A stretch of 63,544 nucleotides of DNA, filler included, from Platydemus manokwari (lineage: Eukaryota): assembly GCA_037951405.1 (NCBI GenBank). It is 4 parts of 4 records of this genome, joined end to end, with 100 filler letters (N's around TTAATTAATTAA, not from the genome) between each part and the next. Parts side by side here need not be neighbours in the genome. Positions count along the whole stretch, not along the records: positions 1 to 18,581 come from JBBMOY010344447.1; 3 more parts are not named here. The stretch is one strand, 5' to 3'. Of the stretch, positions 1-18,581 are shown in pieces. Made by a program: the position numbers and the translations under genes. Position 1 is the stretch's first letter; every line of letters starts with the position of its first letter. Below the pieces are notes generated by a model, which saw nothing but the letters and a program-made list of their open reading frames with translations, did no database searches and was not told the DNA's origin.

Positions 1-74
<74 letters not shown>
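1..74. repeat. (TAT/ATT)n microsatellite
   Basis: About 24 perfect TAT units at the window start; the array may continue beyond the window edge. Confidence 0.95.
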
Positions 75-77
<3 letters not shown>

Positions 78-2662
78 GATTTTTAAAACAAATATTTTAA
101 TGCAATAATGATTGTATCTATTCAACAAAAGAGCTATTAAATTAACAAAACATTATAAATATTTGAGATATTCATCTCGGCTAGTTTATCTCGAGATCGA
201 TATAAAAATACATCGTAAAGATCTTTGAATCCCATGACTGAAAATCAAAAACATTACCTCTTTATTTGGCTTGTCGAACTGATTTATGATATCCAAGGAA
301 TAAATTAATTTCGATTTGTAGCGAAAACCTTGCGGAGGAATGTACAAAGTGTTTGTACCAAAGATTATGACACCTCTGTAACGATATTTTTTCTTAAGAA
401 CATTTAAATATTCTTTCAAAAGAATCTCACTTTATTCGAAGTTCGTTGCAGATTATCGATGATAAAATGAGACTGTTGTCGTCTATACTTTCTTCATTAA
501 TATAAAAAACCGATGCAGTCTGAATGGATTTTAGAAAAATATATTTTTTAATAACATCAATGAGGTATGGATAAATCCATCTCATCAAATAATCAAATCA
601 CACAAGTTGTTCTGCTATCCGATAATATCTATCAAAAATAATATCAAAAAGTGTCAATCAACTCCAGTCTTTATGTGATGACGTACGGAAAAATGCATTT
701 TTCATTATTTTTTATTTTAAACATCCAATTGGCAGTGTTGTGAAGGATCTTTTGAAAGATCTTTAAATAACACACTTAATTCGATAAAAAAATCAGATAA
801 TGGTGTAACAGTTAAAAAAAAATGATCATTTTTTTATCCGTATGGAGCTATTAAGCAAAATAATTACCAATGGCAACGAATGTTTGACAAAATTATTAGC
901 TTAAGTTAAGAAAAATAGTCTTTTGATCCAATTTTAATGTAATGAATTTTCGTGGGTTATTTAATATTAAAATTTATTGGTAATCATTATTTAATGAAAT
1001 TTTTGCTTAAAATTCAATTTTAGAATTAAAAGGGAAAATAACTAACAATCCTTATATATTATGTATAATGGTTTCACTAACATACAATTAAATCAAGTTA
1101 TTATTTTAAATATAAAATTTCTAATTAACAGTCTAAAAATATGAAGTAATTCTTTCGTACTATATCTCCCCAGTATTTCAAAATCTCAAAGACAATATCT
1201 TCAAGGTCCATTATTATATTTGGCCCTCCAAAGTAGACCTCATCAATTTCTACGACAATATTTCGGAATCCAATAATTGTTATATGCCAAGTTATTTATT
1301 TAAAACTTACAAACTTTGTACATTAATAAACAATTTTAAGTTCTTAGTTTTATTTTAATAAAAATTGTTAATATTCGTTCATTGTTGGTTTGTTTATGGA
1401 TGACATTTTGCTAATACACTTTGTGTGAGTCCCGTGCACAAAAAATACTTTATTCTGAATGTCGAAAAGTGATAAGGCCGAATTGTTCAACAAAGCTCAT
1501 ATTCGAATTCCGAAACTTCTTACATATTTATGGCATCCCCACCTGTACTATTTAATTGATTTGGATGAAATCTTCATTTCATTACAGTATGTACAGGTTT
1601 TGCATCTATGTATCCGATCTATTAAATAGATATTAATATACTTATTTTGATATAAAACACAAGTACCTAGTTCCTGGGACTCCTCAATGATTTCCAAGTC
1701 ACGTTTATATAAAATAACTCTAAAAATCTTAGATATCATTCCACTTGCTTCTAATTTGAAAAAAATGGCCACGCTAATTTTCAATTAATTGATTTTTAAA
1801 AGATTTTAAAACTCCTGAGTATATATTATTTGTTTCTAAACAACTAAAATTTTTCTCAAGTACTTAAATAAAAAAATCGAAATACTTTTAGAATTTAATT
1901 AAATAAACTATATAGATTTTTGCAACACACTTCACAAATTAAAAATTTTACTTTATGACCTTTCTTTTTAACTTAATCCGGAAATACAAAAGTTTCCTTC
2001 AATAAATAACAATCAAAGGCTCAAATAAAAAATTAAAATAAATACTTGTAAACTAAAAGCGTTATTAAATAAATTTTGCAATATCAACAACAAACGGTAA
2101 GTATTCAACAGACTCGTTAAAGGAAAATGATTTATTTAAGTTGATAGATGTGAGTTTGAGCCAATATCAGGTTACTACATTACTGTTTAAAATTATTATA
2201 AATACACAACATTATTAAGAGACATAAAAATTATTATTTTAACAAGTAATCTCAAATGAGTAATATTAAAAAAATTGAAGTTATTCACTTTCTTTAAAAG
2301 AAAATGCATTTTAGGAGAATCAGTGCTTACAATTACTTCTAGCGATCAGTTGATTAATTATTTGTGTAAAACTTAAACCGCTTCAAACCATTATGAAGTC
2401 GAGGTTATAAGTTCAAATAATAAAAATCAATCTATTTTTCGAATAAAAAGTTTGTTAAATTAATTCAACTTTTGTGTTTAAATTAAAATAAAATCTTCCA
2501 ATCATAAGTCACATTTGAGCAAAGTATTAATAAAAACATGCTAATGGTGGAAATATAATTTTTTATTTGCATCAAAAAATTTTAGTTGAATAAATAAAAC
2601 ATTGATGTTCATATAAAAATAGAAATCTTAAAGATTAATCAGCAATTTCATCATTAATATCA

Positions 2663-5600
2663 TCACCACCATCCGTCAGAGGTCCGATCAGATTCGTAAT
2701 CCATTTCATCTTGGTACTCATCGATTTTATAATCTGTGTTTTGAGTTTCGATATTTTTTGATTCTATTTGTTTCTGATATTCATCAAAAAAACCATGTTC
2801 ATCGTTCTCGATAATATCAAACAACAAATCACTATGATATTCAATATTGACGTACTCGATCTTTTGAAAGCTTTTATCCGGTAGTTTGTTTTCCTCAGAT
2901 TCTTTCATTGAAGACAATTTTTCATCCATTTTTGGATCACAATTTCGTTGATAAGAATCAAAGAAATCACTGCTATCATCTTCGAAATCGCCATAGTTAT
3001 CCTGATCACTTTCAATTGAAAAATTTTGCTTAATAGTCTGTCGTCTTGATTGTGGAGGACATTTTAAATCATTGTCCAATTTCATTAATTTCAGATCAAA
3101 TAACCATGGTGGAGATATTTGATTTGACTGTATCAATATTTTCCTAAGTTCATAAGAATGCTTCCAATCACCTTCATTCATAAAGGTGATTGATTTTCCA
3201 GTCTTGCTAGAAAAATTATTTATAACTACAATGTTTGACACAATTAAAAATTATTATAAGAAAATCAGGATAGATAATAATTTTTCCACAAGTATACAGA
3301 AAAATCAAAAATGTTTTGAAAAATCCAAACTATCAAACTTATTTCCTTTTCATATTCTATATTTGAAACAGTTTTATTCCAGAATGAAGATAATTACATT
3401 AGATGGCTTCATTTAATATAGACATAGGTTTTTTTATTATTACTTATTCGATAATTAATAAATCAAATCGTTATAGTTAACCAAAGTTTTAAAAACGATT
3501 GATCTGAAGTGATTTCATATAACTTCCAATAAAGATTCTGATATATTTTGAAAAACTTTCCGTTCGGTTGGAAAATCACTATATATTTTTTATTTCCCAC
3601 GGGATTGTTGCTCATTCAAAATATAATACAAGTGGATTTTTTAAACGCTATGCAAAAAATGACATATTTGTCGTAGATAACAATGAATATTGAGTATTTT
3701 ATACATTTTATATGATAACTATATATTTTATACCCCGTAGCAATGCTAATATATTGTGTAATTTAAGAGATTTTTCATTTAAGTCGACACTATACATTCA
3801 TATGAATTCGAGTTTTGATAATATCGACAAATTAAACAAATGATTTTCAACAAAAATAAAATATTTGAAAATTAAAGCATCTAGCTTACCCAGCGCGTCC
3901 TGTGCGACCTACTCTATGTACATATTCTTCAATATCTCTAGGAAAATCATAATTGACAACGCATGTGATATCAGCAATATCTAGACCCCTTGAAGCAACG
4001 TTAGTTGCTATTAAAACTGTACATTTGCCATCCTTAAACCATGATAATGACTGCTCACGATCCTCCTGGCTAAGGTCGCCATGTATATCACATATTTCAG
4101 CATAATGACCTAGTTTACCTGATCTCACCAATCGATCTAGGTAGTTTGTTAAAGATCGACACTGAACTTTGCGTGTTACAAACACAATAATTTTATCCTT
4201 TTCATTCATACAACGTAATATTTCACATAATTCATCGGTTTTATCAGAATTATTGACGAATTTTACCTCTTGGACAACGTCATTGCAAGCCTAGAGAAAA
4301 ATATTAACACAGTGGAAGTAACCTTTAATAAACTTTAAAAATGTAAATGTAAAAACTTTAAAAAATAACACCAGTAGTTGGAAATTGATACCAAGTAATT
4401 TATATTAATTATAATCTATTTATACTTATATATAAAACATTGTGTGCCACTAGAAACACACAAATATAGAAAATACAAGTAATACACGCTCAGAACTATC
4501 AAGGTCTAACATGGTCATTTTCAAGGACATTATAAATTCAACCAAAAAGAATATTAACACATTGACGGACAGTAGGAACAAATGAAGTTCGAAATTTAAC
4601 ATTATATATTTTTGTAATTTTTAGAATATTAGAAGTATTAATTAAGCACCTTTAATTAGGTTGCTGCCATAACCGTCATGGCGTCAGCGAATTCTAGACA
4701 CTAAGTATTGGGACGGTGGCGGCTGTAACTTCGCTTTGACGGTTATAGACGCAAGTGTCCGTCAACGTGCTAATTTCATTATTTAACAGGTTTATAATAT
4801 GCATTTGAATTGCTTTCAAATTGATTATGAAATGCTCATTTTAGGAACAATTACAATTTATTATACTCACGAATTTTTTCTAAGAACTCGTTTTGGTCAT
4901 TGAGGATTTAAAAATGATGATTATTTCTAAAAGATTTTATATATTTTGTTAACTATATTAATTTGTTTAAATAATTGTAGTGAAATCTAATTCAGTGTTG
5001 TGACTTTCCAGAAAATTTCCCATGCGTGATTTATCAAATAGTAGCGACTTAGCCATTATTTTTGATATGTTTCAATTAGTTTTATAAACAGTTTCATTCT
5101 ATTTTAAGAAAGCATTAAGCATGTATTTGTCACTTAAGTCATCAAATTATCTAAAACATATCAAATTACGATTTTACACAATTGAAGTACATGTTCACTT
5201 TCAAAAATCATGATTTTGGTTTTACATAGTAAACTATTCGCAAGCAATTTCCTCTTCAACCTTACATTCATACCATTTGAAGGAAGCAGACATTTTTCAG
5301 AAGCAATATTATTTTGTCGTATCAACTCATACTGGTTTATGCTACGGACATATATTCTATATTATAAATAGAATTTTAATAGGTATTATGAAAAAATATT
5401 TAAGTGAAAAACTAGCAAGGGTATTAGGTAAATCTAATGACAAAATTCTTCACGAGTGTATTCATAACAGTTAAAATATATCTACACATACAATGCAACA
5501 ACATTCTTATTAAGCACTATAAACGTTAAAAAATCTTTATTGTACACAAAATATTGAAAAAATTTATTCAATTTTTTTTATTCAAATTAAAAGCTCCAGT

Positions 5601-8600
5601 AGAGACTATCACTTTGCACAGCCCATTGTATGCAGGACTTTAAATGAAGATTTATTAAAACCACTGCATTAGAAGTTTAATGTTATTCTAAAAAGTAATT
5701 TCAGTATGTGAGTAACTGGAAAGGCAGAATAGGATTTAAAAAATGGGTAATATTATTAATTTTGAGGTCACAAGAAAGCAGGATATTTCTCCTTCAACAG
5801 ACGGAAAAAATGCAAGCAATTTTGCAGATATTTACTTTGTATTATTACATGTGCACTTGTAACTTCGTATGGTTAAGATTTAAGTAGAAATTGAGAAAAT
5901 TTATTGTATTAAAGTCGGTATTATTGTCCTGACTGTAACGTGGGTTTGTTTGATTTAAGATTTATCACACAAAGTTGAATTTTTATTTTTTTATAAAATT
6001 GACGTTTTTCAATTTTTTGTTTTAAGTTTTCTACTTTATCAATATTGTGAATAAAAACAAAAACCCTACTTTTTTGGACCTCATTTCACAGAAAAACCCT
6101 CGCATTTCGTGGTTAAAGAACTTAATATGTAAATTTTCCGAATCTTTTGATGTTTTATGTTAATATTTGTTTATATTTTATAAATCAAATATAAATGAAT
6201 AAATCTCCTATCGTTGTGGAATTTGTTGAAATCAGACTATAATTGGCTCAAAATTACGTCGATTTATTATATCAGAAAATAATAATTTAAAACTCACTAT
6301 TAGGTCCAAAGAACCGACATTAACTTGGACCGGATTATCCATATATAACAAAGCTATTTGCTGAACAGAGTCGGGCCAAGTGGCACTTGTCATTATGGAT
6401 TGTCTCTGTTTCCTTGTCTCTTTAATAATACTAACTACTTGTGGCTCAAAACCCATATCTAACATCCTATCAGCTTCATCGAGCACCAGATAGCTGACCT
6501 TTGAATCAAATAATTTTACTAACATGAAATCACTTAATTACGTCTTTCAAGCACAAACATCCCATTCTTATCAGATCGTTTATTCGACCTGGTGTTCCAA
6601 CTACAATTTCAGGATTATTCATTCGTAAGTCTTTAATTTGCTTGTCTTTCTCTGCACCACCATAACAACAGACTGATTTAATTTGATCATATTGAATCTT
6701 ATCCATTTCACTTTCAATTTGCATCGCTAATTCCCTCGTCGGACTGAGGATAAGTGCAGTAGGCCCTCTCCGGTATACCCTTTGTCTGTGGTAAAAATGA
6801 TTTTCCAATGTTAATAGATCCCCATTATTGAATTATTTTTAATTAATGAGAACAAATGCAGCTCTATTTATTATATACATGTGGGTATTTGTTAATTAAC
6901 TTCGGTAAAACGTAACTTTGAGAATTCTGGGAATTTACTCGTTCACTATTGATAAAATTTTGTTTATAAATATATCAATAAATATTTGCAGTATTTTTGC
7001 CATTTAATATAATACTATCTTTTCGAGTAATCGCTAGTAGCGAAAAAATCATTAAGATCATTACAATCATTAATAAAATTGTGATTTGATACACCAACTT
7101 ATTAACCAATTTATCACAATTAATAGAAATGTCTCAATAAATGCCCATTAGACGATTTAAAGATGCAATAAAATAATTTTAAAGTTTATCAGAAACAACG
7201 CAAATATACACTTCATACCTTCGTTGTATTATTTAAATAAGTTTTATTTAAATATATTCGTTTTTTCGAGGGAGAAATTAGTGCTAGTAATTATATACAA
7301 TTAATTAAATAACAAATTAAATTTAAATAGATTTTTTTATTTTTTATTTTTCTAAAAATGTATTTTATGTAAATTAATTTATCGCCCGTCGATTAATATC
7401 AATTCAAAAGTACTATTGACAAAAATAATGGGGCCTATATATGAATGAATTGCTATAGTTTTGAAATGATAGCATAAAGCAGAAAAAATAGCAATCATTA
7501 AAATCAATATAATAATATTGATCGAATATTATAATTTTATCATCTTCAAAGAAATTATCACTTTCAAAACTATTAAAATTACAATTCATTTTGTATCAAT
7601 AGTTAAATCTCTTTAATTCATAAAATTTAAATATCCCTTCCTACAGATAAAGAAGATGCTTTAAATAAGACAGGTAGTAAATAACAAATTTTGGATCTAA
7701 TAAATGATTTATGAAAGGATTTAACACAAATTACCGATAACACTGGTCAATCAAATATTATAAAAAATTAATATCGTAATTAAAACACTCCGAATAATTT
7801 TTCAAATAGCTCATATTTACTGCATTTACATCACTATCATAGTGTTAAAATATAAATAAATTATAAAAAAATTTAATATTTGATTAATGCGTGATTGAAA
7901 TTGATCTTAGCTATATAGTAGAAAATAAAGCGGTATTTTAAACCTGCTATTTATAAATGTATATGCATAAGATTTGATTTCTATTTCGATAACAATAAAA
8001 TTCGTGAAGATGCAATTCAACGAACTTTGAATGTTACTACAAACCAAAACTATCGACTCATTTTTATCGAAGTTATTTTTATAACATGATAGCAATCGAT
8101 AAAACCATACAATTAATCCTATCATTAACCATCATTAAAATATAATGCAAATATTTACAAACGTTTAATAAGAATCTTACATCACCACAATACTAAATAA
8201 CATTTTGAGATTCAAAGTTAATATAGCAAAAATAGAAAATTTTGATTCATTATAAAATGAAGTTTAATTTATGTTTTGTGGTACCAAGTGCAACACCACT
8301 TGGTAGATGGACTAAAATTTGGGAATATCTTATCAATATACACTTGACCGTGATTCCAACCATTCATATAAAATAAAAACGTAGATTTAATAAATAAATC
8401 TTTCCATGAAAATTCGATGATTTACTAACATTTTATTATCAGTACTTAAATCAATGAATGTCTAAAATATAGAATTACAAGGAAATTGATTTTTCATTAC
8501 TTAAAATTTTAAGTTTTTAAGAATCAAATATGGCTTCTTAGTTTTTAATCATTCTGATAATACGTATTTAGTGTCAAAACACGAGTTTAAGATTAGTAAC

Positions 8601-10384
8601 AGAAGAGAATCACATTGGTAGCTGTAGTATCTTGTCACAAACTTATGTACTAACCACACCATAGGTCCTTCGTGACCTTAGAACACTTTAAACTAAAAAG
8701 ATTTTATGAATATCAAACTTAAACGCTAAGTTACGCTTTGATAGGCGATGAAAGCAGGATTTTTATAAGAACACAGTACCTTTAGAATTTATCTAAAGGT
8801 TTAAAGCATGGACCATTTACCCCCAATCCGAGATTAAATAATCAACATAGACACAATTACAAACTGAGTATGGACACTAACTCTTGTAACTTTGTATCAC
8901 ACATGCCGATAGCAAAATTAAAAGAATTCGTGGGAGAAAACATATTGTGCTTTGCACATACAACATCACCTTAATATCTCAATATCAATAACAAATTATA
9001 TAAGCTTTAATATAAAATAATTTGTATAACTAATGTCACCACAGTTCATACTATATTAACAAATTTCGGAAAGACTATTTTTTTATTTTTAATAAAAAAT
9101 ATTTCAAATAATTCTATCAGGAATTTTAATAAAAAATTTAGTCAAAATATTAATTAGTTTAAATTTACAATTGTTACATTTCACTTGTTAAATGAAAAAA
9201 ATCACTAAAAGCACGTGATCTATTATTTTCCTTCCACGTGAGTTTTTTCTATTACTCTACAATTTATTTTCAAAAATAAAGCAATACATTATAAAATAAA
9301 ACGAAATTCACTTCACAATGCATTTAATAATAACCATTTATATTAAATTGCTTTTTAATTCGAATCATCTTTCAATTTTAAAGATAATTTTGATGTTATA
9401 TTTTTATTGATTAAAATGTGTACTGAAATTTTTATTACATATATTCTTTATTAAGGCCACATTAAGATAAAATGACCAGTGATTCCATATGTTGAATATT
9501 ATCATAAATGTTTAATTAAAATTCAATTGAAAGATAATTTATGTTATAAATATATGTGAAGAAATCCTGATTTTATTGCAATACAAGTTTTAATAAAATA
9601 AATATTAAAAATTATAAATATTTTAGATATCTCGAAAACATATTCTTGCAAAATCTTACTTTATCTGACCATTGATGTGAATTAAAGCTGGTAAGATAAA
9701 TGTCAATGTTTTCCCGGTTCCAGTTTGAGCTATCCCAATGAAATCTCGACCACTGAGAATCACTGGCCAACCAATACATTGAATAGGTGAGGGTTCCTCA
9801 AATTTCAATAATTTGATGATATCAAGAATATCTGGATACTTCCAAAACATTTCTTCAAAATTTCTAATTGGCTTTACGATCCCGGAAGCTCCGGGTAGTA
9901 CTTCGACTTGGTCCTCGTTATAATCATTATCATCGTGTACACTTTCGAATCGATCGATTGGACAAGTTTGCAATTCTTTAGCTATTATATTATTTTTGAG
10001 CAATAGAAAAGACTCAATTTCTTGTAGAGACAATGCTGAAATGGATGCATGCTCTTCATAAAAATTACGACGAATTGGATAGACATCTAAAACATTAAAT
10101 AACTCTCAGACACATTTTTCAAAATTCTCACTTAAATCTTTATCTCCCAGAATATATGGTGTTCTAGGTATTGGATTAATAGATTCCTTTTTAGGTGTCT
10201 CAATTTTTTTTGGAGATTCGGTGATTACTTTTACTACACTAACTTCTTTTTCTTCGCTTCTATCTACTTTATTCCAGTTGCCCCAATAGTCGTCATCACT
10301 CATGTCATCTTGTAGATAACATCTACCAACGACCTTATTTATGTTTAATGATAAATTAGACATTGGAACAGAATTATTTTCCAT
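2663..10384 (-). CDS. DDX43: DDX43-like DEAD-box RNA helicase paralog lacking the KH domain (gene B), about 689 aa, acidic C-terminal tail ending SDGWW
   Basis: Hand-built exons 10384-10132, 10086-9660, 6785-6542, 6498-6298, 4290-3890, 3206-2663. All introns are GT-AG (45, 2874, 43, 2007, 683 nt), phases are consistent, and the total is 2070 nt with no internal stop. Motifs: Q ([13 protein letters not shown]), I (AQTGTGKT), Ia (PTRELA), Ib (TPGR), II (DEAD), III (SAT-WP), IV (IVFV), V (TNVASRGLD), VI ([10 protein letters not shown]). The true 5' end is uncertain. Confidence 0.88.
4554..4773. mobile_element. piggyBac-like MITE in an intron of gene B
   Basis: TTAA-CACATTGACGGAC at 4554-4570 and GTCCGTCAACGTG-CTAA at 4757-4773 (15/17 inverted match, TTAA-type target site). 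Internal inverted repeat CCATAACCGTCA (~4667) / TGACGGTTATAG (~4737). Confidence 0.65.
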
Positions 10385-10438
10385 TTCTTGCACACTGAAT
10401 AAAGATTCATGTTCTAAACCCCTTCAACAAAAAAAGTA

Positions 10439-10651
10439 CAACAGAGTACGGATAACTGAAATCCCTCACAACGTATATAAAGTGGTGTTGATATGTGCAC
10501 TCAGAATTATAATGAGCGTGATTTGTAAAATGTTTACAATATAAGCAACTTAGAAAATCAAAAAAATTATTGTCTATACTTATGTGGAGCATATAAAAAT
10601 GGATAACTCGAACAACGTTCAGTAATATTTCGAGTTATCCTTACTCTACTG
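10439..10651. mobile_element. pogo/Tigger-like MITE between DDX43 gene A and gene B
   Basis: Imperfect terminal inverted repeats TA|CAACAGAGTACGGATAACTGAAAT (left) and CAGTAGAGTAAGGATAACTCGAAAT (right, reverse complement). An extra internal GGATAACTCGAA copy at 10601-10612 forms a hairpin with 10629-10640. Family assignment rests on TIR resemblance only. Confidence 0.5.
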
Positions 10652-10779
10652 TTAAACATCAAACGCAATCAACCAAAAAACAGAATAATCAATAAACTTT
10701 AATTTAATATTAAATGCAATAAATGCAGCCAGAAACTAATATTCAACAATACACAAATGTTTTACATATCTATCGTATT

Positions 10780-13736
10780 TTACCACCAATCATCATTATC
10801 CGGTGCCTCAGATAGTTTAGGCTTATTAAAGTACCTGGAATCGGTTTGAACATCGTCTGTTTCATCAGATCTATGTTTTCGACTGAAATTATTTGACCCA
10901 TCTCTTCTTCCGCCTCCACCATATCCACCTCCATCGCGATCACCACCATAACCTCCAAAATTTCTACCTCGTCCACCTCTTCCTCTTCCACCACCACCTC
11001 TTGAACCATAACTTATACGATATTCTTGATGTTGTTTCATTAATTGTGGTAGAAAATCTGGTACATCTTGGTCTCCATCTTCGAGAATTCTGATCAATTC
11101 GGCAGCATTATTCCAATCATTTTTGTTCATGAATGTGAATGCTTCTCCTGATCGCCTAAAAATGTGATATTGAAACGTGATATATAATAATATTTAATTA
11201 TTTTATATAATTTAAAAAGCAAATAATATATTTTTTAAATTTTAACGAAGCTTAATGATCTGTCATCACAATAAAATCACAGCCTGCAAATGAGAATCAC
11301 TGTTTTATTGATTTCAGAAAAAATAATAAAATGAAAGAATATTAAAATTTCATTTCAATCAATAAATATAAAAATAATAAATTAATACCAACCCAGCTCT
11401 ACCAGTTCGACCAACTCGATGAACGTATTCTTCAATATTTTTAGGAAAATCGTAATTGATAACTTTTGTTAAATCTGCAATATCTAGACCCCGAGATGCT
11501 ACATCGGTTGCAATCATCACATTACGAGCACCGGATCTCATCAATTTTAATGCCATTTCTCTCTCTTGCTGATCAAGATCGCCGTGTATTTCACAGGCTC
11601 TAACTGCACCTTTTGGACCGAGCAAACCTTTAGAACGTTTCAAATATAACTCAAAAGCTAAATCACTGCATTGTGCTTTTCTAGCAACAAATATGATGAT
11701 TTTATCGTCTGGTTTGATTTCAGATAATATTTCAATGAGTCTCTGAGTTTTATCATGATATTCGACATATTCAACATATTGCCGAACAGTGTGACAAGCG
11801 TTTAGATCGAGTGTTCCCACATTAACTTGAATAGGATCTTTCATATGCGTAAGAGCGATTCTTTGAACACCGAATGGCCATGTAGCACTCGTCATTACTG
11901 TTTGTCTTTGCCTTCTAACAGCATATATTAAATTGACAACTTGAATCTCAAAACCCATATCAAGCATTCGATCTGCTTCATCCAAGACCAAATAACTGAC
12001 ATCTTTCAAATTGAGAACACCCGAATCTTTTAAATCTTGAATACGACCAGGAGTTCCAACAACAATTTCTGGATTTTCTTTCAACTGATAGATCTGATCA
12101 CGTTTGTCAGCTCCGCCGTAACAAACAACAGAATCAATATCGTGATATGCGTATTTCTGAACCTCGTTCTGGATTTGGATCGCCAGTTCTCGAGTGGGAC
12201 TTAATATGAGAACGGTTGGACCTTGTCGTTTTTCCCTTGGCCTACAAATAAGAAATAATTTATTTAGATTCATATAAAATAATATTTGACAAAATTTTTA
12301 AAGAAAATTTAATTTAATAGAAAATTTTTTTAATTTAATAAAAGTTAAATAAAACTCTACTTTGGCTGCCCTTCTATATGTATAAATGCTGGTAGTAGAA
12401 ATGCAAGTGTTTTTCCAGTTCCAGTTTGGGCAATGCCAATGAAATCACGACCTGACATTAAAACTGGCCAACCTATACACTGAATAGGAGATGGTTCTTC
12501 AAATTTTTGTTTTCTAATTTCTTTCAATATATCGGGACGATTAAAGAAAGCCTCCTCAAACGTTCTCACAGGTTTCGGAATAATTTTAGATATTGGAATC
12601 TCCTCAATTAACTCCTCGGGATCTTTTTCGAAAACCGTATTGCCAAAATTACAAAACGATGCTCCACTTTCAGATTCGATTTCCTTAATGATAATATTGT
12701 TCTTTTCTAGTAGAAATTTATCCTTCTCTTCATTCGTCATTCTCGACACATTTGGATGTTCGTGGTAAAAATTTCGATGAACTGGGTAGAAATTGCTATC
12801 TCTGTTACTTTTTAATCTCATTTGTACATTATTTGGACGTTTCCTCACGGGCTTTTCTTCTTCCATATAAGTTGGAATACCCCAATCGTCATCTGGTACA
12901 TAACTATCAACTTTTGGTTCATTGAATTTTGAACTAATGTTTAATGGCTCATCTTTAAATATCAATGAATCTATAGAAGGTGTTTCGTCTACCTTTTTGC
13001 CCCACCCACCCCAATCGTCTCCATTGACTTCTTGAACGTTATTAGAATAATTATTAGATCGAGAGCTAAATGATCCATTTGAATAACCGTAATCACCACT
13101 TCTTGAATTATAATTGTTATTATTCTTAAAGTTTGAATTATTGTCTCTGTAACTGTTGTTATTATCCCTATTAGAGTAATTATCATTTGATGTGCTATTA
13201 AAACTTCTATTATATTTCTGATATTTATCTTTATCGTTGTTAGAATCACCCCAAGAATCATTTGAAGACTTCCTTTTCCAAGAAGAACCTCTATCGTCCT
13301 GATCATCCATGTCAAATGTATTTCTGGACTGACGTTTATTTGAATAGCTATTAGATGAATAAACTCTATCATCTTTGTCTCCATAACGATTATCACTACT
13401 ATCATTTAAATGACGTTTTTGTTGCCGTCTTGTAATTTCATCTATTTTGGCTCTGGCTTTATCAATATTTTTCGAAGTACCTTCTAAAAATATTGGAACA
13501 TTATCATCAACAACTTGATCTTTCTTGATCTAAATACAAAAATAGTAAATTTTTTAAACATTCCGCCATTGTTTACATTAATGCGACAATTGCTTTCTTC
13601 AGAAATTTCTTTAATGCGAGAACCGCCTTTGCCAATAATTAAACCTAAATGCTTTGACGGCACATATATTGTTGTTTTTTCTAAAAATTATTTGTTAATT
13701 AACATAATCCCAACGTGAACACATACCATCATTCAT
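10780..13736 (-). CDS. DDX43: DDX43/DDX53-family KH-domain + DEAD-box RNA helicase (gene A), about 835 aa, with N/S/D/R-rich linker and C-terminal RGG region ending NDDWW
   Basis: Exons 13736-13727, 13680-13577, 13529-12361, 12241-11393, 11155-10780. Introns are GT-AG (46, 47, 119, 237 nt) and the total is 2508 nt in frame. The N-terminus [39 protein letters not shown]...KARAKIDEI is a type-I KH domain with a GxxG loop (missed by the ORF track). All DEAD-box motifs are present, including AQTGTGKT and SATWP. The KH+DEAD architecture is characteristic of DDX43/DDX53. Confidence 0.93.
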
Positions 13737-13793
13737 TGAAAATAAATTTAATAAATTGTCTAAAAGTGACTTTTTAAACAAACATCATCACAA

Positions 13794-13802
13794 AGCCATT
13801 TT
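13794..13802 (-). promoter_or_regulatory. AAAATGGCT YY1/Pho-like motif and short uORF start (MAL*) upstream of gene A
   Basis: The motif ends 58 nt before the ATG; the same motif sits at the same distance in gene C (17011-17019). Confidence 0.35.
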
Positions 13803-16800
13803 ATAAATTACATAATTTTATGAAATTAACGAAATTTGAAAATAAGGAAATCGCACACGGAGATCATCTTAAGTATCACAATTAATAATTAAAGCATTTT
13901 ATTTATTTTTAAAGTTCAGTTTATTTAACTTTTAAATGATAAATAATAATTATATACCATTATTTGAATATTTATTTAATATTAAAAAAATTTTAAATAG
14001 TATAATCATTAAATAAAATAGTTATTGCAAATATTCGGGAATACGGAGCATATATTTCTAAAGATAATTTTCTTACTAATTATGTTGTCTTTTTCATATT
14101 ATTGTTGTTGTCAAGCAGTTTCGAAAAAATGAACATGTAAAATTAATTATTGGGATACAATAATTCCAATAGCTACCTTTATCAGTAGGAACAATACCCC
14201 CTCAACCTATAGTAATAACATAAATTTCATCAGTAAGAAGTTTGTCTGATTTTTTAGCAAATATTTTAGAAAAAGTCTTCAAAAAATTGTCACTTAGTTC
14301 CATGTTAATATCAATAGTAAAGTTTTCTTGATTTGACTTCTGACTGATTAGTTATTTTTGTATGTCTTATTTTTCTTCAAAGATGTCACTTCTTTCTTTT
14401 CTTCAAAAATTGTGCCATATTATTTTTGCGTTGACCATTACAGTACTCTGTATTTATTTTGATCTATGTTAACTACTGTTCTACTTATTAAGAAAACTAG
14501 TTATATATTCATATAATTTTGAGTATCAGCATAATTTTATAAATTATAAAAAATAGTCATCACCATCTCTAAAGATATTAATTTTCATATTATTTTTATT
14601 CTATTATTATTGTTGGAGTTCCGGGAAAATGACATTTTTGTATTAACAGTTTTTGCATGATTTGATTCAATGCATTTTAGTAGGAAACTTTTATTATTTT
14701 TATTCTTCATTATGCAATCCTAATTCTTTTCTTTAATAATATAAGTTGTAACAGAAATCCAAATTACCCTTAATTGAAAAATATTTTAATATTCTTGCTC
14801 GATAATAATAAATAATAATTATTATTATTATTAGTGTAGAATCATGAATTAGTTTAGAATTTAGGATTTAATAATAAATTTATTTTTACCATAGTTAAAA
14901 TTATAAATGGTTCTAATGTATGATAATATTTTAAGTTAATTTTGATAAAACTTTAAGTTAATTTTTGGTGAAAATAAATTAATGAGAATAGAAATAAATT
15001 TAATAAAACTTATTATTGCGTAGCGACCAAAAATATTAATTATAAAAAGCCTATATTTTCTCGAATTCACCCGCACTTTAAAATAATCTTTAACAATAAA
15101 ACTCGAAAGGCAAAAAATGTCAAAATAAGCAACGCACTACATGAGAGATATCAGAAAACCAAATGAAGGTTTTAGAAAGGTCAATTGTTATTATGCCAAT
15201 GCAACGATTAAACATAATGTTGGTATAAATAACAAAATACTTTGTAAATGATTTATTAGTCACAATAATACAACTTTACCTCCAAAAACAGAATAACACA
15301 AATTCTAACATAAACATAACACTGGCAGCTAACATACTAGTAATTGACCATCTCGATCTCATTATTTATGCTTGCGTTTTGTGTGTTTCGCTTTTAATTG
15401 ATTGTTTTGTTTATTGTATTTTCGTTGGATCCGACGACCATAATATGTGAGGATTAGTCAATCCCTATGCGTGTCTCCTCGTGTGACTATGTCTCTCGTA
15501 AAAAAGAGATAATTGAAAAACATTATTATTACATATTATTATTACGACAATTATTATTAAAATCACAACAAGCTGAAGTAAAACGAAACTTTTAAAAAAT
15601 CAAATCAATAAATTTAAAGGTTTAAATATCAATTAAATATAAAAGTTTAGTTCAAAAAATTTGGTCATTAATTCAACAAGCTTTTGAATTGGACGAATTT
15701 GGAATCGAATTGATTGTTTACAAGGTTAGGATTGTGTTGGATATTTGGCAGCAGTTTGAGTTTAGTATTGTTAGAAACAGATTGATGAGATTTTTTATGT
15801 TAAATTTTGGAGAGATGCTTGAAATTGAGTTTGACTCAGATTGATGAGATTTGGGTTTTAGTTGGGCTAACTTCAACAATTTAGACTTTGTGAATACTTA
15901 TCTTTGAGTATGACGATTTTGATTCTGATATTTATGAGTTTGATTTTGATAATCATTTTACAAATAAATAATTGTATAAATTGATGTTATACAAAATGAT
16001 TATAAAATATATATTATTATATATAAGTTAAAAATTATTATTCAATAAATTCCAAGAAAAGAATTGATAGAATAAAAAACATCAAAGAAAGAAAATTAGT
16101 GAATTTTAATCAATTTATAATTTTAAATGTCAAAAATTTTATTAAAATTATGTTGAAAAGTACAGAAAATGCTAAATTTTTCTCAATGATTGCAAATACA
16201 AAGTTTCTAAAGTCAAAGACCATATAAGTTGAAGTGAAACGATTACAGGTCACTAATATGAAAACATGGAAATTTTCATAATTTGATTTTAAACGAATTT
16301 CTAAGTTAGGACTAGAAAAAGTGATCAATATAATTTTCCGGAGTTTAAAGATAATGAAAGAAAATAATAATAATTTATATATATTTGTTAAAACACATTT
16401 TTAATCAATTAAAGTATAACCCGTCTAATTATTTAAAGGCCCTCTGAGGCCTAATTATCATATTTATTCACATTATTCTACCTTGTCATGTCTTACACCT
16501 ACAACTATGAAAATAGATAACGATTACTCTGGTTTCAAACAGTATGAAAAGATTACTCAGATTTAATTAGGTTTTTCAGAATCCTATTAACAAAAGGAGA
16601 AACATAAATAAAGTCACAACAAAATTTCCATTACATAACATATTCATGATTATCATAATATTTATTCGCAAATTAGTATCTTCGATACAATAAGTCAAAA
16701 ATTACATAATTTAATAAACTTGACAAGTTTACTTGATATTTATAAATAATGATCCAATTTTTTAATGCGTCACATTCTTGGTTTTATTTCCATATTTAGA

Positions 16801-17010
16801 ACATATAACTATTATATGTAACTCATTTTAACCATAAAGTTGCTTAATTCAACCACAAACGATTTAAATTATCAGTTATTTTTAAATAAGTTTTGTTAAA
16901 CTTTGAACAATGTCTCATATTTCTAAGAACAATAGTAGTCTTTTATTATCATTATTTATTTCGATTTTATTGTAAAAGCTTTTACAACCTAATTAAGAAA
17001 TCTGAAAATA

Positions 17011-17019
17011 AAAATGGCT
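17011..17019 (+). promoter_or_regulatory. AAAATGGCT YY1/Pho-like motif and short uORF start (MAMSLDLF*) upstream of gene C
   Basis: Positionally conserved with gene A, ending 58 nt before the ATG. Confidence 0.35.
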
Positions 17020-17076
17020 ATGAGTTTAGATTTGTTTTAATTAATTTTGCTTTGGGAATTTACAAAACTATCATTA

Positions 17077-17665
17077 ATGAATGACGGTATTTATTATGAT
17101 TTGTCTTTAATTATTTTATTAACGGAAACTTATAAACTTTAGAAAAATCTACAATCTATGTGTCAACAAGACACTTAGGACTAATTATTGGGAAAGGTGG
17201 ATCCAGAATTAGAGAAATTTCGGATGAATGCAACTGTCGAATTAATGCAAGATAAAATGGCGGCATTTTCTAATAAATTTTCTTTGGATCTTTTAGATAA
17301 AGAAAGATCAAGCCGTTGACGATGAAGTTCCAGTGCTCTTGGAAGGATCACCAAGAAATATTGATAAAGCCAGATCAAAAATTGATGACATTACACGGCG
17401 TCAGTACAAGCGTCGCGATAGTGATGACAATGATCGACAATACAGTTCAAATTACAATAACTCAAATAAACGGTCATCTCGTCGTAACTATGACGATGAC
17501 GATAATGACAAAGACGATAGGGGTTCCTCAAGGAAGAGGAAGTCACCGAATGGGCGTCAAAATGAACGAGATAGATCTCGCCGATCGACTAGAGATAACG
17601 ATGATCATTATACCGGAAATTCTCGTAATTCACGATCTTATAATGATCGCAGCAGAAAAGAATAA
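17077..17665 (+). CDS. KH-domain-only paralog of DDX43 (gene C), about 160 aa, with R/S/D-rich tail
   Basis: Exons 17077-17086, 17143-17246, 17297-17665 (483 nt). Intron 1 is GT-AG (56 nt) and intron 2 is GC-AG (50 nt), both at the same positions and phases as in gene A. Protein: [78 protein letters not shown]...DDRGSSRKRKSPNG...RSRKE*. AATAAA overlaps the stop and occurs again near 17718. Confidence 0.78.
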
Positions 17666-18581
17666 AATTGAAAAATGAATGTTACTATTTAATATATTTG
17701 AATGGTTTCAGTTTTGAAATAAAGTAATTGCAAGTTAACTTCAGTCATTTTGAATTAATGTGAGTTGGTTGATGATGGACAAACAAAGAAGTCATACAAA
17801 TTGGTCACTAAAAAGGAATTGTTAGCCAACACACGGTAAATGTTTATTTCAGGGAAACAATGTATCATCTGATTAATTGTTACTTTTGCACAAATTGACT
17901 TCTGTGATGAATTATTTTTTATTTAAAAAATATTTTTGTGTTTTTTAAAAATTTATTATTATCATGTTTCAATTTAGTATATAAAGTTTACTCTTGGAAC
18001 ATAAAAAGCGATGCAATTTGTTTCTACTTAAATCGCATATCAATTATTATATAAATTTATTTGCTGTATTTTTCCGATATTACTTGATTTGTAAACTCGA
18101 TAAATTTTAATTGAAAATATTCAGAACATTGGATTTTCGATTAGTTTTCTGAGCTGCGTTAATGTTTACAGATAAATGGCATGAAATCGTCGATCTAATG
18201 TTCATTAGAGATGGAAAATGCATCAATTTAATTATAAATATTAATGTATAGAAAGTTGTAATTATTTTTAATTTAATTGTAAAAGTGAAATTCATGATAT
18301 TGAAATAATTGAGTATATGATTAGAAAACAAATAAGTTTAATTTAAATCGATTGAGATTAAAATTCAATTTAAATATTAATAAATTTCAAATGATGAAGA
18401 CTGGTATAAAATTTGATAAAACTTGAAATTTACAGTAAATATTATTTACAGCATTTAATTGAAAAATGTTATGAAGTAATTTTTTATTGAGTAATTTGGC
18501 AAAGACATTTAAATTATGTTTTTTTGAATGTTTTAAATTTTGAAGTGAAATTAAGTTGATGAAAAATAGCATTGTTATTTG

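Follow-up and report, generated by a model that had tools for sequence, protein, structure and literature searches.

Can the KH domain of a DDX43-type helicase persist as a gene of its own, or is a KH-only copy of such a gene a fragment on its way to decay? DDX43 (HAGE) is, to our knowledge, the only DEAD-box helicase with a KH domain. Work is still under way on what that domain contributes, both in selecting RNA and in activating the ATPase allosterically. A locus of Platydemus manokwari (assembly GCA_037951405.1) bears on the question, as it holds side by side a gene with KH and helicase core (gene A), a gene with the core only (gene B) and a gene with the KH only (gene C), all apparently intact, which amounts to a natural domain dissection. 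The window, i.e., the whole stretch of DNA that was analysed, has 63,544 nucleotides with its filler, and the three related genes lie in its first piece (positions 1 to 18,581, from JBBMOY010344447.1), which at about 25% GC is rich in AT, carries short introns (45-56 nt) and gave empty Rfam and tRNA scans. A literature search returned no report of a DDX43 duplication or of a KH-only derivative. We put at about 0.72 the probability that selection has maintained gene C as a protein-coding paralogue of the DDX43-type helicase with the KH domain only.

The two helicase genes are laid out as follows.

10780-13736, minus strand: gene A, with exons 13736-13727, 13680-13577, 13529-12361, 12241-11393 and 11155-10780
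about 3886-10384, minus strand: gene B, a KH-less DEAD-box paralogue with introns of 2-3 kb
10384-10132, minus strand: exon a of gene B, followed by a 45-nt intron (10131-10087)
10086-9660, minus strand: exon b of gene B

When spliced, gene A reads through 835 codons to a single stop at the end, a frame in which Pfam recognizes KH_1, DEAD and Helicase_C and which ends in an RGG-rich C-terminus. Its best named relatives are insect proteins labelled DDX43 by their source, with the same KH_1, DEAD and Helicase_C architecture. The RGG/GGY repeat region of gene A consists of the kind of sequence that is often arginine-methylated. Genes A and B both close with an acidic stretch and a WW pair before the stop (…DNDDWW at 10780-11155 and …SDGWW at 2663-3241, both minus strand), and gene C has neither the RGG/GGY repeats nor this acidic WW end. 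At the left edge of the piece, an Asn-rich reading frame (2-88, minus strand) shows weak tblastn matches to the low-complexity linker of gene A and may represent the terminal part of a further gene that the edge interrupts.

Relatives of the region from KH to linker are few. A profile of the exon-3 starts of C and A, run over 1.84 billion representatives, found two, both A-type only.

P0001: a partial 273-aa UniParc protein, UPI00060B1CF2, with a complete KH_1 domain at residues 6-68
P0002: a protein encoded on L001, a 1.9-kb Logan contig of SRR33002330 with part of exon 2, intron 2 and exon 3 of an orthologue of gene A

Genes C and A stand head-to-head, with C on the opposite strand 3.3 kb upstream of A.

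17077-17665, plus strand: gene C, three exons, product of 160 aa
17077-17086, plus strand: exon 1, ATG AAT GAC G (M, N, D and the first base of a split codon)
17087-17142, plus strand: intron 1, 56 nt, GT-AG, at the position and phase of intron 1 of gene A (46 nt)
17143-17246, plus strand: exon 2, 104 nt or 35 codons with the split codon, the N-terminal half of the KH domain including its GKGG (GXXG) loop
17247-17296, plus strand: intron 2, 50 nt, GC-AG (GCAAGA...TTTTAG), with AATGGCGG at 17256-17263
17297-17665, plus strand: exon 3, with the TAA stop at 17663-17665
17297-17386, plus strand: first part of exon 3, the C-terminal half of the KH domain to residue 68, placed by gapless collinearity with P0001
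17387-17545, plus strand: linker within exon 3, ending in RKRKS (17531-17545), homologous by protein alignment to the post-KH linker of gene A
17546-17665, plus strand: Arg/Ser/Asp-rich tail with the TAA stop, collinear with gene A exon-3 residues up to 144

The exons of gene C thus reproduce the positions and phases of the first three exons of gene A. Exon 1 is homologous to exon 1 of gene A (ATG AAT GAT G) and to the N-terminus of P0001, MNDE(K/R), and the first introns of the two genes are not alignable in sequence apart from their matching position and phase. The protein would consist of a KH domain at about residues 6-68, at the very N-terminus, and about 90 disordered residues after it. 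The open reading frame, the ATG, the GT-AG of intron 1 and the AG of intron 2 are intact, so that, of the four splice dinucleotides, the GC at the intron-2 donor alone departs from the canonical form. One AATAAA (17661-17666) overlaps the stop and a second (17718-17723) follows 55 nt on. A disrupted frame, a lost start or splice site, or an omega near 1 would be expected of a pseudogene; gene C shows none of these, and the GC donor is its sole blemish. Open alternative frames also lie over exon 3, both in C (17316-17678, plus strand, 120 codons) and in A (12989-13405, minus strand, 138 codons); these are most likely a by-product of low-complexity coding rich in GAT, GAC and AAT, and the substitutions fit the KH frame.

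Domain assignment was made with the exons searched separately, and the exon pieces were set side by side only for codon counts and trees. Exon 2 of gene C matches positions 3-34 of the 66 in Pfam KH_1 (PF00013) above the gathering score (E = 5e-10), and exon 3 on its own has no Pfam match. The whole domain is nevertheless traced through P0001, which matches KH_1 from profile position 2 to 65 of 66 and with which the second half of the KH domain of C is gaplessly collinear and about 83% identical; identity of C with the KH region of gene A is 78%. Residues 1-80 of P0001 align end to end with the solved KH domains of KSRP and FUBP, and KH domains of PCBP and IMP are also full-length matches. Judged from these alignments, the KH domain of gene C is a complete, canonical type I KH domain. 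Gene C has the DDX43-homologous KH domain and lacks the helicase core (motifs Q, I, II and VI), and by its sequence it is hence a derivative of DDX43 and not itself a member of the DDX43 or DEAD-box helicases.

Codon comparisons show that this small gene has been under purifying selection. A preliminary description of the locus had compared exon 2 with gene A by hand, and its counts are exact over the 35 codons, with 28 residues identical, 12 codons differing synonymously and 7 non-synonymously (S/T, S/P, T/S, R/K, R/K, D/E and C/S). Its observation that a core of 13 residues is invariant in protein in spite of 8 synonymous changes within it was confirmed as well, and the GKGG loop of the type I KH domain lies inside this core. 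By the Nei-Gojobori method, exon 2 of A and C differs at pS 0.63 and pN 0.10 (Fisher p = 5e-7), and the first 39 codons of exon 3 (17297-17413) at pS 0.62 and pN 0.14 (p = 1e-6). Over the 77-codon KH region pS is 0.64 (dS about 1.4, near saturation) and pN 0.11 (dN 0.12), which gives an omega of about 0.085 (Fisher p = 2e-13). Downstream, the linker up to KRKS has pS 0.90 and pN 0.25, and the tail has pS 0.69 and pN 0.48 (p = 0.06).

A pairwise omega below 1 could reflect constraint on gene A alone, and the relatives were therefore sought as outgroups. With our own GY94-type three-branch codon model (F3x4, star tree of C, A and L001), an omega of 1 on the C branch is rejected in the KH region (p = 8e-5 when branch lengths are free, 4e-13 when t_C = t_A), in linker and tail together (p = 0.012 and 1e-6, respectively) and over all 144 shared codons (p = 2e-5 and 3e-20); for the linker alone it is not rejected with free branch lengths (p = 0.35). 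Saturation of the synonymous sites makes the point estimates of omega on this branch (0.01-0.08; about 0.01-0.05 in KH) imprecise. A codon-model dN/dS against gene A and its orthologues had been named in the preliminary description as the check on purifying selection, and with L001 as the orthologue its claim is borne out on the C lineage itself. Parsimony with L001 and P0001 assigns five KH changes to C alone (T>S, S>T, K>R, E>D and E>D), all conservative, and five to A alone; the KH domain of C has hence evolved no faster than that of A, and more conservatively. In neutral simulations with at least 20% of sites substituted, the start and the open frame survived together in at most 0.2% of runs, and the mean KH identity was at most 60%. 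The earlier statement that gene C is not a decayed fragment therefore holds, with its frame open, its start intact, neutrality rejected and its KH domain changed no faster than in A.

Two other sources of the conservation were considered and set aside. Non-coding constraint is ruled out by the position of the changes, which sit at third positions of the C frame, and recent gene conversion is ruled out by the saturated synonymous sites. On a smaller scale, an identical run of 19 nt (17356-17374, plus strand, and 13470-13452, minus strand, codons for NIDKAR) stands amid the saturated divergence, and N34 and R69 are common to A and C against both relatives; from these sequence patterns a small gene-conversion tract may be suspected, which would slightly inflate the apparent conservation there.

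Whether the constrained frame can be expressed depends on intron 2. The donors at this site read GCAAGA in C, GTAAAC in A and GTAAAA in L001, so that C has GC, not GT, unlike the GT of the other two. Since the donor is GC, expression of gene C is predicted to rest on GC-AG splicing. The intron carries the sequence features of a GC-AG intron, i.e., GC at +1/+2, AG at the 3' end and AAG at +3 to +5, and its +5 base is G where gene A and L001 have A. A G at +5, within AAG at +3 to +5, is the usual pattern of working GC donors. If intron 2 were retained, translation would end after ...CRINAR at 41 residues, with half a KH domain. An alternative GT donor at 17235-17236 (the GT in AACTGTCG) was rejected because the frame shifts into an early TGA, and exon-2 skipping was rejected for the same consequence. 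Exon 3 has no in-frame Met and its frame is constrained, which argues that it is read from exons 1 and 2 through a spliced intron 2.

The non-coding surroundings of gene A have been retained in part in gene C, in the form of two elements, even though neutral sequence is saturated and the introns do not align elsewhere.

17011-17040, plus strand (gene C), and 13802-13773, minus strand (gene A): promoter-proximal block at -66 to -37 from the ATG, starting with AAAATGGCT and with TTTGTTT at its end
17256-17263, plus strand (gene C), 13570-13563, minus strand (gene A), and L001:107-114: octamer AATGGCGG in intron 2 of each

The promoter-proximal block is identical between A and C at 23 of 30 positions, against a maximum of 21 over 2000 random intergenic comparisons, and AAAATGGCT itself (17011-17019 and 13802-13794) begins 66 nt from the ATG of each gene. 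No such block was found at gene B. The octamer occurs twice in the whole piece (0.14 expected), both times in an intron 2, that of A and that of C, and its first base lies 41 nt upstream of exon 3 in both genes and 44 nt upstream in L001. In C its context reads AAAATGGCGGC, which we take to resemble the YY1/Pho consensus. On its distribution, the octamer may be an intronic regulatory element of the DDX43-type genes of this clade.

These features bear on the possibility that gene C worked for long and was then silenced, either by the change of the intron-2 donor from GT to GC or by a loss of transcription, so recently that decay is not yet visible. The selection tests average over the entire history of C and are compatible with a very recent death. 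In its favour, C has GC at a donor that is GT in both A and L001, the AAT at the end of the exon fits the donor consensus poorly, and searches of the collections yielded no annotated or assembled C-like protein. However, the ATG, the GT-AG of intron 1, the AG of intron 2, the frame of 160 codons and the AATAAA at the stop are all intact, the +5 G that sets this donor apart from those of A and L001 fits a compensated, functional GC-AG intron, and the -66 block and the intronic AATGGCGG have both been kept. Nor does the KH domain of C show an excess of private changes over that of A. A recent silencing is, in our judgement, improbable on this balance.

The tail of gene C has been remodelled, and here the preliminary description held in part. 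The frame is indeed open after RKRKS, with the sequence quoted at the time and with a composition rich in R, S, D and N, but the tail is not a non-homologous gain. Rather, tblastn aligns residues 1-144 of gene A exon 3 to 17297-17653, i.e., up to three codons before the stop, and C and P0001 stay collinear along the tail (KRKSPN.., ..NER.., GNSRN..SYND), with P0001 reading KRKSPNDDRNER...GNSRNNNSYND where C reads KRKSPNGRQNER...GNSRNSRSYND. By these alignments the tail of C is the low-complexity Asn/Ser/Asp linker of the parent, in the same frame, remodelled to Arg/Ser/Gly and truncated by a stop. Eight tail changes are private to C (D>G, D>S, K>R, D>R, N>D, S>H, D>G and N>R) and two to A. Arginine makes up 10 of 39 residues in the tail of C (17546-17662), with 8 RS/SR dipeptides and 41% R+S, against 3 of 49 and one dipeptide in the equivalent part of A; the net charge of the post-KH region is +8 in C and +3 in the A equivalent.

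The nucleotide composition of exon 3 is likewise unusual. It has a GC content of 0.40 and a CpG observed/expected ratio of 1.7, and 15 of its 23 Arg codons are CGN; the corresponding stretch of A has values of 0.29 and 0.79, and the surroundings have 25% GC. Candidate causes of this richness in CpG and GC are selection for Arg, biased conversion and the methylation state.

C, A, L001 and P0001 all have the basic motif (W/R)KRKS ahead of the tail. As KRKS is conserved in the latter three, the motif is not new to C, in which only the W>R change is new. RKRKS contains four consecutive basic residues, and KRKS departs from the strict monopartite NLS pattern K-(K/R)-X-(K/R). SR proteins are defined by one or more RRMs together with an RS domain that is at least about 50 residues long and over 40% RS. 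SR protein identity was rejected for C, which has no RRM in Pfam and an RS-like stretch of 39 aa.

The age of the duplication was approached through trees of the few available sequences. When a tree is built from the KH-linker proteins, A pairs with L001 (80% ultrafast bootstrap), C falls inside the clade of A, L001 and P0001, after P0001 (88%), and the branch to C (0.33) is about as long as the path to A (0.30). Of the quartets, ((C,P0001),(A,L001)) has the best RELL value (0.84), and a grouping of C with A is not rejected (AU 0.16). Gene A and its orthologue on L001 have a synonymous divergence of pS 0.51-0.89. The grouping of A with L001 and the length of the C branch suggest that the duplication is older than the split from the L001 species, and on these sequences the duplication that gave C probably predates that split. 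No C-like small protein was found by a word search with exon 3 of C among candidates of 67-213 aa, and a search with residues 1-170 of P0001 among candidates of 94-298 aa returned P0001 itself alone. As the clade is represented by two sequences only, these blank searches say little against C.

Gene B raises the possibility that C is not an isolated piece. B and C would then be the two halves of one former full-length DDX43 paralogue, and C would supply its KH domain in trans to B. Such a state could be reached by a single inversion of gene A together with the 5' part of the paralogue, breaking in the linker, which turns a head-to-head pair into C(+), A(-), B(-). The fragments are complementary and do not overlap, as C corresponds to gene A exon-3 residues 1-144 and the homology of B to A starts, by tblastn, at exon-3 residue 159 (window position 10360). 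The stop of C comes three codons past the end of its homology, and the first in-frame ATG of B (10384) lies 8 codons ahead of the start of its own, about 400 nt downstream of the stop of A. That B starts where C stops suggests the split. B retains all catalytic motifs (its ORFs show Q, I, Ia, DEAD, SAT and VI), and its extra 45-nt intron falls within a single exon of A. By tblastn, there is no helicase-like sequence near C (13737-18581 has no match to gene A exons 3b-5 beyond the KH-linker part) and no KH remnant near B; weak matches to KH DNA in the last exon of B (3115-3149, 3400-3441 and 3616-3646) are out of both order and frame and were dismissed as chance. In Bombyx, the KH domain of DDX43 stimulates the ATPase of the core independently of RNA binding, and DDX43 without KH has minimal ATPase, nearly dead (PMC8025031). 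By analogy, a KH-less paralogue would plausibly need a KH partner.

Yet the trees give the two would-be halves no clearly common age. B is sister to the A, L001 and P0001 clade with 100% support and on a long branch (0.89) in the helicase tree, in which the clade itself is placed weakly (65%) beside aphids and adelgids, whereas C falls inside that clade after P0001 (88%). Both placements are weakened, however, by the length of the branch to B and by the remoteness of the outgroups. None of the putative breakpoints is marked by inverted repeats, and B has no -66 block. Moreover, the low-complexity boundaries are fuzzy, any break in the roughly 250-aa linker would be tolerated, and by our own rough estimate the boundaries would coincide by chance in about 10% of cases. 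A common origin of B and C from one split paralogue thus appears unlikely, if somewhat less so than a recent silencing of C.

A further possibility is that C is the 5' end of a third full-length DDX43 paralogue, with its helicase exons past 18581 and reached through a donor inside exon 3. The introns of 2-3 kb in gene B show that such lengths occur at the locus, and only about 0.9 kb separates the stop of C from the edge of the piece. However, the homology to A runs in frame to residue 144 and is followed three codons on by the TAA, which overlaps an AATAAA; no helicase-like coding sequence is present in 17666-18581 at E<1; and the region is one uninterrupted exon in both A and L001. A continuation of gene C beyond the piece is very improbable.

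The reading of gene C as a maintained KH-only paralogue can be carried further, from its purifying selection, intact structure, conserved cis elements and homologous tail to a likely origin and mode of action. An old, inverted, partial duplication would have copied the promoter-proximal region of gene A, its exons 1 and 2 and about 430 nt of its exon 3, with the copy ending inside the low-complexity linker and a stop three codons past the last detectable homology. Transcription of gene C probably starts from the DDX43-type promoter that it has kept, and its intron 2 is probably removed by GC-AG splicing. In other animals, the DDX43 pathway belongs to germline small-RNA and RNP biology. The protein of C would probably be a free-standing module for binding single-stranded RNA in this pathway. 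For example, the KH domain of human DDX43 folds in isolation and binds ssRNA and ssDNA via its GXXG loop, with a preference for pyrimidines (PMC7949032), and Bombyx DDX43 releases cleaved RNA from Ago3-piRISC (PMC8025031). With its GXXG helix-loop invariant and a basic tail gained, C is by analogy best read as a free KH RNA-binding module. It could act either as an RNA adaptor or competitor for the targets of A, or as a KH partner in trans of the KH-less B. The putative role of the basic tail would be to add non-specific RNA affinity, possibly with nuclear or granule targeting.

If gene C is expressed, it gives a direct handle on how the KH domain of DDX43 acts alone and on whether it acts in trans, and it documents how a partial duplicate becomes a small RNA-binding gene, its Asn-rich linker recoded to an Arg/Ser tail. 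If it is silent, it is a well-dated case of a long-lived partial duplicate that has just died. A split of one paralogue into C and B, if true, would make the pair a DEAD-box helicase that occurs naturally in two pieces, and the locus a clear case of gene fission in which neither half has been lost.

Gene C may be compared with several known systems. With DDX43 it shares descent of its KH domain from a DDX43-type gene and an intact GXXG loop (GKGG), but it has no helicase core; in addition, the KH domain of this clade lies at the extreme N-terminus, whereas insect DDX43 proteins have 40-90 residues ahead of it, and it has strongly diverged from the insect DDX43 KH domains. Small single-KH proteins include bacterial KhpA, which goes with KhpB (bioRxiv 10.64898/2026.10.12.757534), and the mammalian germline group of KHDC1, DPPA5 and OOEP, and they typically work through a partner or by oligomerising. 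They resemble C in being roughly 100-160 aa long with little beyond one KH domain, but they are unrelated to it, as C arose from a helicase gene and has a canonical type I KH, to which the KSRP, FUBP, PCBP and IMP domains come nearest among solved structures. Likewise, the tail recalls RS domains in its RS/SR dipeptides (8 in 39 residues) and its 41% R+S, but it comes without an RRM, is shorter than about 50 residues, is interleaved with D and N, and derives from an Asn-rich linker.

MicroProteins are single-domain paralogues that arise by partial gene duplication and modulate their multi-domain parents. Similarly, C comes from a partial duplication, has kept one domain, probably shares the regulation of its parent, and could potentially compete with or complement the parent or a paralogue. 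The classical microProteins keep a protein-protein interaction domain and are dominant negative, whereas C keeps a nucleic-acid-binding module, one which in Bombyx DDX43 also activates the helicase core.
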